From sequence record OV032902.1: a stretch of DNA of 64,000 bases. One strand, given 5' to 3'. The notes beneath the pieces are model-generated. The model was not told the DNA's origin. It did no database searches and worked only from the letters and a program-made list of their open reading frames with translations. Position 1 is the stretch's first letter, and each line of letters opens with the position of its first letter. Below, piece by piece: positions 13,093 through 45,470 of this stretch. The position numbers and the translations under genes were made by a program.

Positions 13093-14562
13093 ATGAAAAT
13101 TGAACTAGTTCAGAATGATCGAGTTATCCAAGTCGTCCACGGCTCTGATTCGATTGCATTCCGATATTCAGTATGGACGGTACTGAATCAAAAGAATACC
13201 ACAGATGATATCTTTGGTCCTACCAATGAGTTTTTGGCAACATTGTCTGAAGACGTTCAGAAGCGCATGTTTGACCAATACAAAATGGCGGACGATGTTT
13301 TCTGTGACGGTGGTCCAATCCTTACTATCCGTGATCAGCTCTCGGTTATCACACGTACTATCATCAGCTTCATCAACTATGATGACCTGTACAAGTTCTG
13401 TGTAGATAAAGGTAAGTTCTATCAAGATCCACCAAACCCACCGATGCAAGGTAAGAACCCTCCTGAGATGACATACAGTCTTCAAGAGATGTTCGACCTG
13501 CGAGTACTTTGTGTAGGTGTAAAACTCTTGACTCCAATCCTAGGCACTTTGGTATCTATTACTAAAGAGGAAATCAAGACATCGCAGAAAGAACGCGTAG
13601 CCGCAGAGATTGTAACCTGTACAGGAATTTCTGACTGGGCACCATACCAACGTTTCAATACATATATCGGTGTATACTCACATCGTCGCATGAGTGCAAT
13701 TCCAATGGCATTGCGTTTTGGTGCGGCACGTGCAGACTTAGACCGTTATCTGTTAGGCATGTCAATTGTACGTCGATTCGCAATTGCACGTCTAAGACAC
13801 GATGGTGATGGTAGCATCTTGGCATACGTGTACACGTTCCTTGAGGATAAGATTAAACAACTATCCAAAGACAACTGGAACGATAAGTTCGCCGGACGTG
13901 GTTCATCTAATGACCAAGAAGGCGTCAGCTATGCGGACAATCACCGTATATCTGAAAAGGTTACTAGTGACTATCTAGTCCAAGCAGCTGAGTACATTAA
14001 AGACACAGCTATCTGGTGGGAGCACCTTCATCTCCCAGCTGAGGTTCGCGCTAAAGCTCAAGCGAATTTCAACACTATATCACTAGAACGTAAGGAGCAA
14101 TTTCAGATCTTCCCAGAGATACATAACTTCTTATGTTCGTTCCTGGTTATCAAAACTTTTGATCCAAGAACTCTGGAAGACCTGCGTGATAAAGATGCCT
14201 TGACTATTGTAGTGGCAACATGTGCAGCAATCTATGAAAGTATCGGTCATACTGATCTTTCTGATCTACTGCTAAGTCGTCGTAAAGAACGTGACCCTGG
14301 TGTTATGGTCGTTACTACAAACAATCAAGTAATCAAACGTTTGAGTCATGCCCTGGAAGCAGAATTATCTCGCTGCTATCCGAAGATTCAACAATCACAC
14401 ATTAACAACAAGACCAATCCTGGTAAGGTAGCTATTGAAGCTATGGTTACAGTTGTTAATACCTACGAGTGGCTGGACGCTCCTGACCTAACTGGTATCC
14501 GTCATTCAATCGCATCATTCATTGCCTCAATCGTACCTGAGACAATGAAAACCCCTAAGTAA
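13093..14562 (+). CDS. non-virion RNA polymerase promoter-specificity (sigma-like) subunit (phiKZ gp68-like)
   Basis: 489 aa, AAGGAG RBS, first gene of the gp68-gp75 block. Position and size only. Confidence 0.7.
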   Translation: MKIELVQNDRVIQVVHGSDSIAFRYSVWTVLNQKNTTDDIFGPTNEFLATLSEDVQKRMFDQYKMADDVFCDGGPILTIRDQLSVITRTIISFINYDDLYKFCVDKGKFYQDPPNPPMQGKNPPEMTYSLQEMFDLRVLCVGVKLLTPILGTLVSITKEEIKTSQKERVAAEIVTCTGISDWAPYQRFNTYIGVYSHRRMSAIPMALRFGAARADLDRYLLGMSIVRRFAIARLRHDGDGSILAYVYTFLEDKIKQLSKDNWNDKFAGRGSSNDQEGVSYADNHRISEKVTSDYLVQAAEYIKDTAIWWEHLHLPAEVRAKAQANFNTISLERKEQFQIFPEIHNFLCSFLVIKTFDPRTLEDLRDKDALTIVVATCAAIYESIGHTDLSDLLLSRRKERDPGVMVVTTNNQVIKRLSHALEAELSRCYPKIQQSHINNKTNPGKVAIEAMVTVVNTYEWLDAPDLTGIRHSIASFIASIVPETMKTPK

Positions 14563-22502: not shown

Positions 22503-22526
22503 CCTCCTAGCCTAAGGGCTAGGGGG
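22503..22526 (+). terminator. intrinsic terminator
   Basis: CCTCCTAGCC-taag-GGCTAGGGGG then TTATTCTTT. Confidence 0.7.
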
Positions 22527-22585
22527 TTATTCTTTATGAACATTTTTCTTTAATCTTATGTTTTGATTAAAGAAGGAGGTGCGTC

Positions 22586-24100
22586 ATAGACATCACCGTC
22601 AATAGCCACGGGTTCTTTGTGTATCCAAATGGTCCTATTGAGTTAAAGCATATTAAAAGCTTTGCTATGACTGTAGCCGAAGTAGAAACTGTTCCTGACC
22701 CACGTACTCGTCAAAAGGTGCGACAAGTCAAAGCAGTTTATGCTACGTACAAAGAGGACCTTACTGAGTTCGGATTCCTTCGTGCTGACCTAGATGCTTT
22801 CATTAACCATATGGAATTTATCGGGTATGATACGAACCAGATGAATATCACTTATCGTGATATGTACGAACCGGTAACGATGCCAAACGTAATGAAGGAA
22901 GAGTTTAAACCGCGTGATAAACAGAAGCCTGCTGTAGAGTTCCTTTCTAAGAAAGAAGCTAAGAATCGTGTCATTGATGCGGCTACAGGTTTCGGTAAAT
23001 CATTCCTGGGTTTGAACACAGCTTTGAATTGTGAAGAGAGAGCTGCTTTTATTATGGAACCAGGTCATATTAAAACATGGCTGAAGTCCATACCTGAGCA
23101 AACACACATCAATCCAAAAGATGTTGTGGTTATTCAGGGCTCTGCTAACCTCAAAGCTCTTCTAGATTTAGAACGCGCTGGGCAGAACCACTACAAGCTT
23201 ATTTTCTTTAGCGCAGTTACGCTACGTAACTATTATAAGGAATACGAAGGTTTAGAGTTTGATTATGATGTTAAACCGCACGACCTATTCGAGTACCTAA
23301 AGGTAGGTACTATCATTCGTGATGAAGTACATGAGTCCATACATAGTTTGGTTCGCCAAGTTATCTATACTCACGTACCGCGTGTGATTTTCCTTTCGGC
23401 AACGCTAGTATCAGATAATAGCTTTATAAACAAAGTTTACGAACGAGTTTTCCCGAAAGCAGATAGATGGAAATCTGATGATAACCGTCACATCTGTGTA
23501 CGCTCTGTCTTGTACGACATGTACGACCCTAAGCGGAAGATAAAGTCAAAAGGCTTCCGTGGTTATTCGCATGTTAAGTACGAACAAAGTATCATGAAGA
23601 ATAAGAAGGTGTTAGAACAATACCTTGACTTCCTTGCTAGTATGGCGAATGCTTCATTCGTGAAAACATACAAGGATGGTTGTAAGTTCTTAATGATCTG
23701 TTCTACTAAAGAAATGTGTAAGTTGGTAGCGGAAAGAATGAAAGCTGATTATCCTCAGTTTACTGTTGGTGTTTACATCCATGGTGCTAAGGATGAAGAA
23801 CTGTACGAACGTGACATGGTTATATCTACACCTAAGGGTGCAGGTACAGGTGTCGACATTCCAAACCTTTCTACAGGTTGGTTGACTGTTGCGTTGAGTT
23901 CAACACAGTTAGGTAGACAGATTATGGGTCGCTTGCGTCCTATTAAGAAGTATCCTGACCGTGACCCAATGTTCTTGTATTTAACAAACAAGAGTATAAG
24001 TGCTCATCGTCAATATGACACAAAACGCCGTCAGGACGTCAGATTCCGTTCTAAAGATTTTAAAGCCATAGATACCGGCTTTATCCTAAAAGCAGCCTAG
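22586..24100 (+). CDS. superfamily 2 helicase (phiKZ gp75-like)
   Basis: Walker A ATGFGKS, Walker B DEVH, motif III SAT, GTGVDIP and QIMGRLR. Start proposed at ATA 22586 (see findings); track start is GTG 22619. Confidence 0.92.
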   Translation: MDITVNSHGFFVYPNGPIELKHIKSFAMTVAEVETVPDPRTRQKVRQVKAVYATYKEDLTEFGFLRADLDAFINHMEFIGYDTNQMNITYRDMYEPVTMPNVMKEEFKPRDKQKPAVEFLSKKEAKNRVIDAATGFGKSFLGLNTALNCEERAAFIMEPGHIKTWLKSIPEQTHINPKDVVVIQGSANLKALLDLERAGQNHYKLIFFSAVTLRNYYKEYEGLEFDYDVKPHDLFEYLKVGTIIRDEVHESIHSLVRQVIYTHVPRVIFLSATLVSDNSFINKVYERVFPKADRWKSDDNRHICVRSVLYDMYDPKRKIKSKGFRGYSHVKYEQSIMKNKKVLEQYLDFLASMANASFVKTYKDGCKFLMICSTKEMCKLVAERMKADYPQFTVGVYIHGAKDEELYERDMVISTPKGAGTGVDIPNLSTGWLTVALSSTQLGRQIMGRLRPIKKYPDRDPMFLYLTNKSISAHRQYDTKRRQDVRFRSKDFKAIDTGFILKAA

Positions 24101-24117
24101 TCGTAAGACTGGGCTGC
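24092..24117 (+). terminator. hairpin after helicase
   Basis: GCAGCCTAGTC-gtaa-GACTGGGCTGC with a GNRA loop; poor U tract. Confidence 0.5.
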
Positions 24118-24164
24118 CTAATCTTATGACTAGTCTTTTATTTTTTGTCAAAAGGAATGTTCCA

Positions 24165-24647
24165 ATGTACAAATCGTCTACATTGCACGTTCAGGGGTTA
24201 TTGCAAGAATTGATGCGATTCGTAGAAGAGGGCATGACGGTGCCTTTCTGTCTATGTATCTATGACGTCATTCACAATCCTCATGATGCGTTAGCAATCA
24301 AAAACACATTAGAGCTATTCCCTAACATCGATATCCGTGTAGCTATCATGTCAGGTAATAACTCAAACGCACTTCTGGCTGCGGCAGCAGTACCAGCAGA
24401 AAAGCGTTATATAACAAGCCAAGGTATCTTCTCTTTCTCGAAGCCTGTATATGTTGGTCAAGGTTCTTACAAAGACCTAAAGATCGCAGCAGAAGCTCAG
24501 AAGATGTTGGAAGTCCGCATCGATGAAATCCTTGATAAAGCTTACAAACTTCCGAAGTCCTCACATGAGATGCACAAAGAACAAGAGATTGTTCGTGCTG
24601 AGGCAGTACGCGGATACGGATTCCAGGATTATAAGGAGATCTTATAA
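24165..24647 (+). CDS. degenerate ClpP-like protein, probably catalytically inactive
   Basis: Aligns by eye to ClpP (DALAIKNTL, KRYIT..., GQGSYKDLKI, AEAV.GYG). The catalytic His position (MIHQP) reads FSFSKP and the SPGG loop is absent. ATG 24165 has an AAAGGA RBS. Confidence 0.7.
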   Translation: MYKSSTLHVQGLLQELMRFVEEGMTVPFCLCIYDVIHNPHDALAIKNTLELFPNIDIRVAIMSGNNSNALLAAAAVPAEKRYITSQGIFSFSKPVYVGQGSYKDLKIAAEAQKMLEVRIDEILDKAYKLPKSSHEMHKEQEIVRAEAVRGYGFQDYKEIL

Positions 24648-25156
24648 TGGAAGGAAAAACTGGTATCAATAGTAAGCGCGCTGTGTTTCTTTGTACTGAG
24701 TTCAATATGGGCATGGGTAAAGAAGCTATCAAGCGCATGGAAGCATTGAGTGCAGAAAGTGATGAAGACATCCTTATTGTTATCTCAAGCTATGGCGGCT
24801 GTTGTCGTACAATGCTTGCTATTCGTGACGCAATGAAACGTTCTCGTTGTCGTATCAATACACTAGTACTTGGCAAAGCTATGTCAGCAGGTTGTTACAT
24901 CCTAGTAACTTCAGCAGCTACTGGTGTTCGTGCAGTAACCAAAGATTGTCAGATCATGATTCATGGTCCAAACGGTGTGGCTCCTCTAAATGAGAAAGGC
25001 CTTGGCAATATGGAATACTACTACGACGTTGTTAAAGAGCACTTCAAAGAAGATGCAAACTTTGATGATGAGAAACTAGATCAGCATCTAGACCGTGACT
25101 TCTACTTCATGGGTGACCAAGCTGTAGAGCTAGGCTATGCAGACGTTGTTTTATAA
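24647..25156 (+). CDS. clpP: ClpP-family serine protease
   Basis: SSYGG loop, GKAMSAG (Ser), MIHGP (His), RDFY (Asp), AVELGYAD. Confidence 0.9.
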   Translation: MEGKTGINSKRAVFLCTEFNMGMGKEAIKRMEALSAESDEDILIVISSYGGCCRTMLAIRDAMKRSRCRINTLVLGKAMSAGCYILVTSAATGVRAVTKDCQIMIHGPNGVAPLNEKGLGNMEYYYDVVKEHFKEDANFDDEKLDQHLDRDFYFMGDQAVELGYADVVL

Positions 25157-25162
25157 TAACTA

Positions 25163-25186
25163 CCTCCTTCCCGCAAGGGAAGGAGG
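25163..25186. terminator. bidirectional terminator
   Basis: CCTCCTTCCC-gcaa-GGGAAGGAGG between convergent genes. Confidence 0.8.
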
Positions 25187-25194
25187 AGTTAATC

Positions 25195-25590
25195 TTATTC
25201 TTTTTCTTTTGGCGGTTCCGTAAAGTTACCGGCCTTGTCCTTATTCTCTTTAAGCTTCTTAACAGCTTCATCCATTTGGTTCTGGAGTTCTTCTGCTCGT
25301 TCAGCTTCTTCCTGGTTGTTTTCGATAACTGCTTCCATGACCATGTCATAGAGATCGATAGGAAGATCGAGAATATCACGAATGCCCATTTGGGCTTTCT
25401 CAGGAACACCCAGTCTGATAAGTTTCTTTATCTGATGCTTGAGTATTCTTTCACTTTCCATGCTCGGGTGGTGAGTTACAGACTTAATGGGATTATAGTA
25501 ATCCGGGTCATTATAGTCAACGTAACCCATTTCCGACTCGGTAATAATTCTAGGGATAAGCTGGTCAGACGGTTTACCCGTTAGCTTCAT
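25195..25590 (-). CDS. hypothetical protein, possibly translated only as a -1 frameshift extension of the upstream gene
   Basis: 131 aa from ATG 25590, which has no SD. Frame is open back to 25719; coiled-coil C-terminus. Confidence 0.7.
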   Translation of the reverse strand: MKLTGKPSDQLIPRIITESEMGYVDYNDPDYYNPIKSVTHHPSMESERILKHQIKKLIRLGVPEKAQMGIRDILDLPIDLYDMVMEAVIENNQEEAERAEELQNQMDEAVKKLKENKDKAGNFTEPPKEKE

Positions 25591-45395: not shown

Positions 45396-45430
45396 TAATG
45401 ACCAGCCTTCGGGCTGGTCATTATTATTTT
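45396..45430 (+). terminator. intrinsic terminator
   Basis: 12 bp stem TAATGACCAGCC-ttcg-GGCTGGTCATTA then TTATTTT. Confidence 0.85.
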
Positions 45431-45470
45431 CTCGTTTAATCTTATAGCTTGTACTATATGGAGAATCCCC

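Follow-up and report, generated by a model that had tools for sequence, protein, structure and literature searches.

An inactive and an active ClpP-fold gene in tandem in Vibrio phage vB_VpaM_sm033: a probable two-subunit serine peptidase of the ClpP/ClpR kind

The stretch of DNA analysed here (the window) comprises 64,000 nucleotides of sequence record OV032902.1 and belongs to Vibrio phage vB_VpaM_sm033 (100% identity), a phiKZ-like jumbo phage with a genome of 320 kb; position 1 of the window corresponds approximately to record position 186001. Our subject is a pair of adjacent plus-strand genes, ORF1 and ORF2. They are preceded by the split RNA polymerase beta and beta-prime genes and a gene encoding a superfamily 2 (SF2) helicase, the homologue of the conserved phiKZ gp075, and are followed by a block of minus-strand genes which includes a gp077 homologue. 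ORF1 (24165-24647) encodes a protein of 160 amino acids that is, from its fold model, family profile and residue columns, a putative dead, ClpR-like subunit of the ClpP fold. ORF2 (24647-25156) encodes an active-type ClpP of 169 amino acids, as judged from Pfam, its fold model and residue columns. The GenBank labels are 'hypothetical protein' for ORF1 and 'clpP1' for ORF2. ORF1 starts with the ATG at 24165 and not at 24126; M-Y-K begins all homologues at the former position. The junction of the two genes (24633-24649, plus strand) was read directly from the sequence: the TAA stop codon of ORF1 (24645-24647) overlaps the ATG of ORF2 (24647-24649) in the sequence TAATG, and an AAGGAGA ribosome-binding site for ORF2 is located within the 3' end of ORF1 (24633-24639). 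A sequence-only reading of this DNA had described two ClpP-fold genes, coupled by TAATG and lying between the SF2 helicase and the gp77 block, and both the coordinates and the folds were confirmed.

ORF2 is an unambiguous member of the ClpP superfamily. It matched the Pfam family CLP_protease (PF00574, MEROPS S14) with 92.7 bits at a cut-off of 20.2 (E = 3.4e-26), its top sequence match in the PDB was M. tuberculosis ClpP1 (1.4e-13) and, for its AlphaFold2 (AF2) model (predicted local distance difference test, pLDDT, 87.8), the best 50 PDB matches listed were all ClpPs with template modelling (TM) scores of 0.76-0.82. The catalytic residues Ser80, His106 and Asp151 and the oxyanion residue Gly51 are kept in 16/16 relatives in the alignment, as expected from the full Ser-His-Asp triad reported before. 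The oligomerisation sensor, Asp149-Arg150, stands before the catalytic Asp and this pair is mostly kept among the relatives. Judged by its sequence, ORF2 is not an ordinary bacterial ClpP. Its scores with the NCBIfam ClpP equivalog and subfamily models were all far below the cut-offs (66.5 versus 308.6 bits for TIGR00493). The axial loop and helix A are absent from ORF2; only 2-10 residues precede the beta-1 Arg in the relatives, whereas mature E. coli ClpP has 26. The docking pocket has lost its aromatic residues as well: in the sequence alignment, Y60, Y62, F82 and F112 of E. coli ClpP are replaced by L, V, R and A, and the F82 column holds Arg in 13/16 relatives. The handle had been described as shortened and without the usual motif. 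Indeed, it is shorter than that of E. coli ClpP and does not contain the G-Q-x-T-D-I motif, but the difference amounts to four residues only and a 22-residue helix is still predicted.

ORF1 clearly has the ClpP fold according to its structural model and family profile. Its match to Pfam CLP_protease (E = 0.0012, 19.2 bits) was just under the cut-off of 20.2, and a search of the PDB with the single sequence gave E = 0.04. The AF2 model (pLDDT 90.8) matched, among the best 50 PDB entries listed by Foldseek, exclusively ClpPs (TM <=0.77, probability 1.0); the identity to these solved ClpPs is about 17-22%. Alignment of the 48-sequence ORF1 family with the ORF2 family by hhalign gave a probability of 96.7% (E = 4.7e-10), compared to 25% with small ORF1 and ORF2 alignments, and the hidden Markov model (HMM) of the ORF1 family found E. 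coli ClpP at 1.2e-19. Thus, the fold predicted for ORF1 in the sequence-only reading agreed in AF2/Foldseek and in the family profile alignment. A search of 1.84 billion representative proteins with the ORF1 HMM yielded 40 clusters, two of which were false positives. P0034 (1698 amino acids) and P0044 (1509 amino acids), which matched in several stretches and might have consisted of concatenated domains, were rejected as cadherin/Ig-repeat proteins. A word-seeded protein search with ORF1 returned three close relatives only, and a scan of IMG/VR with ORF1 alone gave no matches.

From its residues, ORF1 is catalytically dead. The catalytic His column is occupied by Ser92 (His in 7/48 family members) and the catalytic Asp column by Gln140 (Asp in 0/48). 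At the nucleophile position ORF1 has Asn66 or a gap, depending on the alignment, with Ser67 adjacent; neither column is conserved in the family, and the nucleophile column of the 48 members contains Ser (17), Thr (13) and other residues. The GG of the oxyanion loop is missing and His37 takes the oxyanion Gly column; further, the N-terminal loop with the gate is absent from ORF1. The handle has the spacing of E. coli ClpP, with G100, D104, L105 and I107 corresponding to G130, D134, I135 and I137, and Gly100 is kept in 42/48 family members. The sensor columns hold Lys138-Glu139 in ORF1, compared to Asp-Arg in ORF2 and Glu-Arg in E. coli ClpP. The replacement of His by Ser, the missing glycine loop and the normal-looking handle had all been recognised before, and to these the loss of the Asp has to be added; the statement that ORF1 keeps the nucleophilic Ser did not hold, since it depends on the alignment and the column is not conserved in the family. 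The idea that the two proteins have complementary defects was half right: the differences in the handle and in the oligomerisation sensor are real.

ORF86 of phage BONAISHI (L009:4432-5004), a member of the ORF1 family, combines a Ser in the nucleophile column and a His in the His column with Gly in place of the catalytic Asp. Because some members, like this one, are less degenerate than the copy in the window, the family shows a gradient of catalytic decay. ORF1 is a live gene under strong purifying selection, as had been asked of it if it were a functional partner. The ratio of nonsynonymous to synonymous substitution rates (dN/dS) was 0.081 for ORF1 between the window and locus L004 and 0.019 between phages pir03 and C-ZP2022, while the same pairs gave 0.034 and 0.020 for ORF2; most other pairs were synonymously saturated, which left two informative pairs per gene.

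An active ClpP gene was found directly downstream of, or fused to, the ORF1-like gene in 15/15 loci with downstream sequence (window, pir03, C-ZP2022, BONAISHI, Yong XC31, L004-L008, L011, L012, L015, L017 and L019); besides the window, these comprise three cultured close relatives, four metagenomic loci, BONAISHI, Yong XC31, three distant metagenomic loci and two fusion contigs. The co-occurrence of the pair in other jumbo phages, which the sequence-only reading had proposed to survey, is thus borne out. The slot of the pair in these loci is the one after the gp075-like helicase, and stop and start codons overlap or abut in 10/10 unfused loci checked. An ORF2-type ClpP without ORF1 was not seen in this clade. 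In contrast, at 31 other viral ClpP loci from IMG/VR, ClpP was present as one gene only and nothing ORF1-like was encoded within 3 kb of it. The slot after the helicase contains four or five small unrelated ORFs, and no ClpP-like gene, in PhiPA3, Ea35-70 and Vibrio phage 2 TSL-2019 (L052, L053 and L054). The interval that separates the gp075-like helicase from the gp077-like block serves phiKZ-like phages as a slot for variable cargo; the clade of BONAISHI, pir03 and sm033 carries the ClpP pair there. L012 (4726-5953) has two extra genes, encoding 230 and 149 amino acids, between the helicase and the fusion, and the minus-strand three-gene block is absent in L012 and L019 (5047-5541). In the distant metagenomic phages the surroundings vary and the adjacency of ORF1 and ORF2 alone is invariant.

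The location of the pair bears on the question whether it could be the capsid/scaffold (head-maturation) protease of the ClpP-related S14 type. ORF2 matches PHROG families named head maturation protease (phrog_94, 8.4e-16) and the NCBIfam model Clp_rel_HeadMat (NF045542, 8.3e-15), but the score with the latter is 55.1 bits and, therefore, far under the cut-off of 120. Moreover, sm033 already encodes a head-maturation protease of the Peptidase_S80 (phiKZ gp175) type, which is typical of phiKZ-like phages, at OV032902.1 153934-154761, outside the window; the pair itself has RNA polymerase and helicase genes for neighbours and occupies a variable slot which, in the three phages named above, is free of ClpP, and ORF2 carries no scaffold- or capsid-targeting extension. 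Because of the sub-cut-off score, the separate S80 protease and the non-head location, a role as head protease was rejected as scarcely credible, in line with the sequence-only reading. The pir03 homologue of the S80 protease is labelled in GenBank only as 'virion structural protein'.

In three protein clusters, ORF1 and ORF2 are naturally fused: P0026 (348 amino acids), P0028 (330 amino acids) and P0050 (340 amino acids). In each, the N-terminal half is ORF1-like and the C-terminal half is a ClpP with the triad, and the three clusters are less than 50% identical to one another. P0028 and P0026 are encoded at the syntenic slot in contigs of 153 and 204 kb, respectively. Between the ORF1-like domain and the beta-1 Arg, the linker spans about 16-17 residues, barely more than the unfused proteins have in their free tails. 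Further, the pairwise distances of ORF1 and ORF2 correlated with r = 0.95, and the partial correlation given the helicase was still 0.81; that between ORF1 and the helicase given ORF2 amounted to 0.015. This rate covariation beyond the helicase is suggestive of a partnership. A physical complex of ORF1 and ORF2 is the best explanation of the gene fusions, the co-occurrence and the translational coupling, which, as comparisons between genes, give it strong indirect support.

These data also speak to the suggestion that ORF1 is a decoy which joins and poisons host ClpP or titrates host ClpX or ClpA, with ORF2 acting separately. ORF1, being dead but of the ClpP fold and near-canonical in its handle, would suit such a role, and knock-down of host clpP affects infection by another nucleus-forming phage, albeit via motility (PMC11797060). 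ORF1, however, is strictly linked, translationally coupled and repeatedly fused to ORF2, which points to ORF2 as its partner; it has no N-terminal loop, its Lys-Glu sensor would clash with the canonical Glu-Arg sensor of the host protein and it is merely about 17-22% identical to cellular ClpPs. Remodelling of host ClpXP or ClpAP, as put forward in the sequence-only reading, was not upheld, since the N-terminal motif is missing from both proteins, the pocket aromatics of ORF2 are lost and the evident partner of ORF1 is ORF2. The decoy role was rejected on this last ground and is, in our view, very improbable.

With moderate confidence we propose that ORF1 and ORF2 form a dedicated two-subunit, ClpP/ClpR-like serine peptidase of the phiKZ-like (nucleus-forming type) clade, which is probably independent of Clp unfoldases. 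ORF2 would supply all active sites (Ser80-His106-Asp151) and ORF1, a dead paralogue, would be its obligatory structural partner and correspond to the ClpR that accompanies ClpP3 in cyanobacteria and plastids; the translational coupling would favour equimolar synthesis of the two. In other ClpPs, gating of the pore and contact with ClpX depend on the N-terminal motif, and the IGF loops of the unfoldase bind to hydrophobic sites (PMC9035409). Here the gate is missing, the ORF2 pocket is altered and the published annotation of pir03 (BLAST, InterPro, CDD and structure-based PDB matches) contains no ClpX/ClpA-type ATPase, which together suggest that the ORF1-ORF2 enzyme probably works without ClpX or ClpA. 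It would then be an ungated peptidase acting on peptides or unfolded proteins in the cytoplasm of the infected cell. A tblastn search of all phages with E. coli ClpX matched 346 records; the listing is silent on sm033.

The fusions also bear on the arrangement of the subunits. Canonical ClpP has both chain ends on the apical face of a barrel that is about 90 Å tall. Because the natural fusions have linkers of about 16 residues, the C-terminus of ORF1 would be near the N-terminus of ORF2 within the complex. A linker of this length would be unable to join opposite rings of the barrel, and the swapped sensor charges would put like charges together at a hetero ring-ring interface; both points favour same-face neighbours over a stack in the style of ClpP1P2. 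Hence, ORF1 and ORF2 are probably neighbours on the same face, either in mixed rings or with a ring of ORF1 placed apically on a ring of ORF2, and a dead ring stacked handle-to-handle on an active ring is less likely.

The latter arrangement would be that of a ClpP1P2-type core, with a homoheptameric dead ORF1 ring handle-to-handle on a homoheptameric ORF2 ring and host ClpX or ClpA docked on one face to drive the barrel. Chains of P. aeruginosa ClpP2 and of actinobacterial ClpP1P2 rank among the top Foldseek matches of ORF1, a canonical-length ORF1 handle and an altered ORF2 handle could be the two sides of a matched hetero-interface, and known ClpP1P2 cores require both rings for activity (PMC9035409). 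Nevertheless, we consider such a core unlikely: the fusion linkers cannot reach from one apical face to the other, as far as general knowledge of the barrel geometry goes, the N-terminal motif is absent in both proteins and ORF2 has no pocket aromatics. In addition, at the oligomerisation sensor (described in PMC9035409), pairing of Lys-Glu in ORF1 with Asp-Arg in ORF2 across the rings would bring like charges together.

Alternatively, ORF2 could be a self-sufficient homo-oligomeric peptidase and ORF1 a regulator (inhibitor, cap or substrate adaptor) instead of a ring subunit. The triad, the oxyanion Gly and the Asp-Arg sensor of ORF2 are all complete, like-with-like pairing at the equator fits an ORF2 homo-barrel and, with fusion linkers as short as these, ORF1 could sit apically on ORF2. 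A simple cap would not be expected to keep the whole ClpP fold and the handle motif (G100 in 42/48), as a ring subunit would, and the clade has no ORF2-type ClpP that occurs without ORF1. We therefore regard a regulatory ORF1 as unlikely too, to about the same degree as the ClpP1P2-type core.

Several points weigh against the two-subunit peptidase proposed here. Fused chains in a 1:1 ratio cannot evenly fill heptameric rings, so that either the ring arrangement suggested above or the canonical ClpP geometry must yield. The difference between the ORF2 handle and the canonical ORF1 handle could mean that, as in ClpP1P2, handle pairs with handle across the equator. The absence of an unfoldase gene was read from the annotation of the relative pir03, and genuine ClpX-binding ClpPs differ among themselves in the pocket residues, which makes the loss of the aromatics suggestive only. 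With respect to the evidence for partnership, a maximum-likelihood tree separates the three fusions, but a single origin was not rejected (approximately unbiased test, p = 0.18); the pairs used for the covariation are non-independent and many of their distances are saturated.

If the 1:1 ratio fixed by the fusions and the linkers of about 16 residues are both taken at face value, two stacked homoheptamers and seven-membered mixed rings with even filling are excluded, and the architecture could be unlike that of all known Clp cores. Such an enzyme could consist of a pseudo-symmetric ring with an even number of members (3+3 or 4+4, SppA-like) or of a four-tier stack in which dead rings would cap the apical faces of the active barrel in place of an unfoldase. 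With either architecture, the nucleus-forming phage would have at its disposal, in the host cytoplasm, a protease that needs no ATP and is constitutively accessible. We rate this as rather doubtful.

Among known systems, the proposed enzyme most resembles cyanobacterial ClpP3/ClpR and plastid ClpP/ClpR, in which a dead paralogue is an obligatory partner within one core and, like ORF1, is conserved under selection. Mixed rings are known from these systems (PMC7966870). Unlike the phage proteins, which start at strand beta-1 and, in the case of ORF2, have no pocket aromatics, ClpR and ClpP3 have retained the N-terminal region and use ClpC; subunits of only about 160 amino acids and natural fusions further distinguish the phage pair. 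The likeness of ORF1 to ClpR is one of type: ORF1 belongs to a family of its own, with about 40 clusters, and has diverged too far for reliable placement. With the ClpP1P2 systems of Mycobacterium, Listeria, Pseudomonas and Streptomyces, the phage pair would share the need for two paralogues together, and it is among these systems that ORF1 has its closest structural matches and ORF2 its top hit by sequence (M. tuberculosis ClpP1). Variation of the handle motif has been proposed to tune ClpP1P2 activity (PMC9035409). However, ClpP1P2 cores are stacked homoheptamers of which both are usually catalytic, with the unfoldase on one ring, whereas ORF1 has neither the His nor the Asp, the sensor charges of the phage proteins are swapped and the short linkers oppose ring-on-ring pairing within one chain.

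ClpP has been noted before in some jumbo phages, where its distribution is patchy and host proteins were suggested as its targets (Iyer et al. 2021, PMC7824862). The ClpPs of Rak2-like Escherichia, Klebsiella and Erwinia phages are short (about 157-166 amino acids), like ORF2, and about 28% identical to it. Other jumbo-phage ClpPs are encoded by single genes without an ORF1-like partner in the 31 IMG/VR loci tested, and some of the jumbo phages with a single ClpP encode their own ClpX or ClpA. The natural fusions can also be compared with E. coli SppA (S49), a membrane-bound protein with tandem ClpP-fold domains, one of which carries the Ser of a Ser-Lys dyad. In both, a domain without the nucleophile is followed by one with it, but the active half of the fusions has a Ser-His-Asp triad; the SppA_dom model matched the fusion P0028 with E = 0.007 (16 bits). 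To our knowledge, mixed active/inactive ClpP cores occur in cyanobacteria, plastids and apicoplasts and always within ATP-dependent machines. In the literature, no description was found of a viral dead/active ClpP pair, its conservation or its fusions; the one trace is an entry in the genome table of BONAISHI, where 'Clp protease subunit' is given, uncommented, for the upstream gene (PMC6207643). If the proposal is true, the phage enzyme would be a stripped-down viral version of such cores with about 160 amino acids per subunit, no gate and no recognisable docking pocket for an unfoldase, conserved across a deep clade of jumbo phages and sometimes made as a single chain. As a small and tractable system, it would lend itself to the question of what a dead subunit adds to a ClpP core, and it may reveal a new quaternary arrangement of the ClpP fold. 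Further, it suggests that infection by phiKZ-like Vibrio phages introduces a proteolytic activity which has so far gone unstudied, and several such phages are under consideration for phage therapy in aquaculture.

The pair would form its own small transcription unit between two hairpins. The left boundary is a hairpin at 24092-24117 (plus strand), which has 11 bp and a GUAA loop of the GNRA type and overlaps the stop codon of the gp075-like helicase gene; RNA folding gave -23.4 kcal/mol (z -4.9) and 0/200 shuffles were equally stable. Because no U-tract is adjacent, this hairpin may be a processing or attenuation site instead of an intrinsic terminator. The right boundary, found by a terminator scan of both strands, is a terminator-like bidirectional hairpin at 25163-25186, between ORF2 and the convergent minus-strand genes, with a GC-rich stem of 10 bp, a GCAA loop and a folding energy of -25.2 kcal/mol (z -6.9).

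A 9-mer, TAATCTTAT, is located at 24119-24127 (plus strand), 38 nt upstream of the ORF1 start. The window has five copies of it, compared to 0.86 expected by chance. The four plus-strand copies (22551-22559, 24119-24127, 25190-25198 and 45437-45445) are intergenic and lie 2-35 nt 3' of a GC-rich hairpin (e.g. 22503-22528 and 45401-45422), whereas the minus-strand copy (13847-13855) has no such hairpin or intergenic context; the copy at 25190 has no plus-strand gene nearby downstream. The 9-mer is a candidate phage promoter or other regulatory element, or an element associated with terminators.

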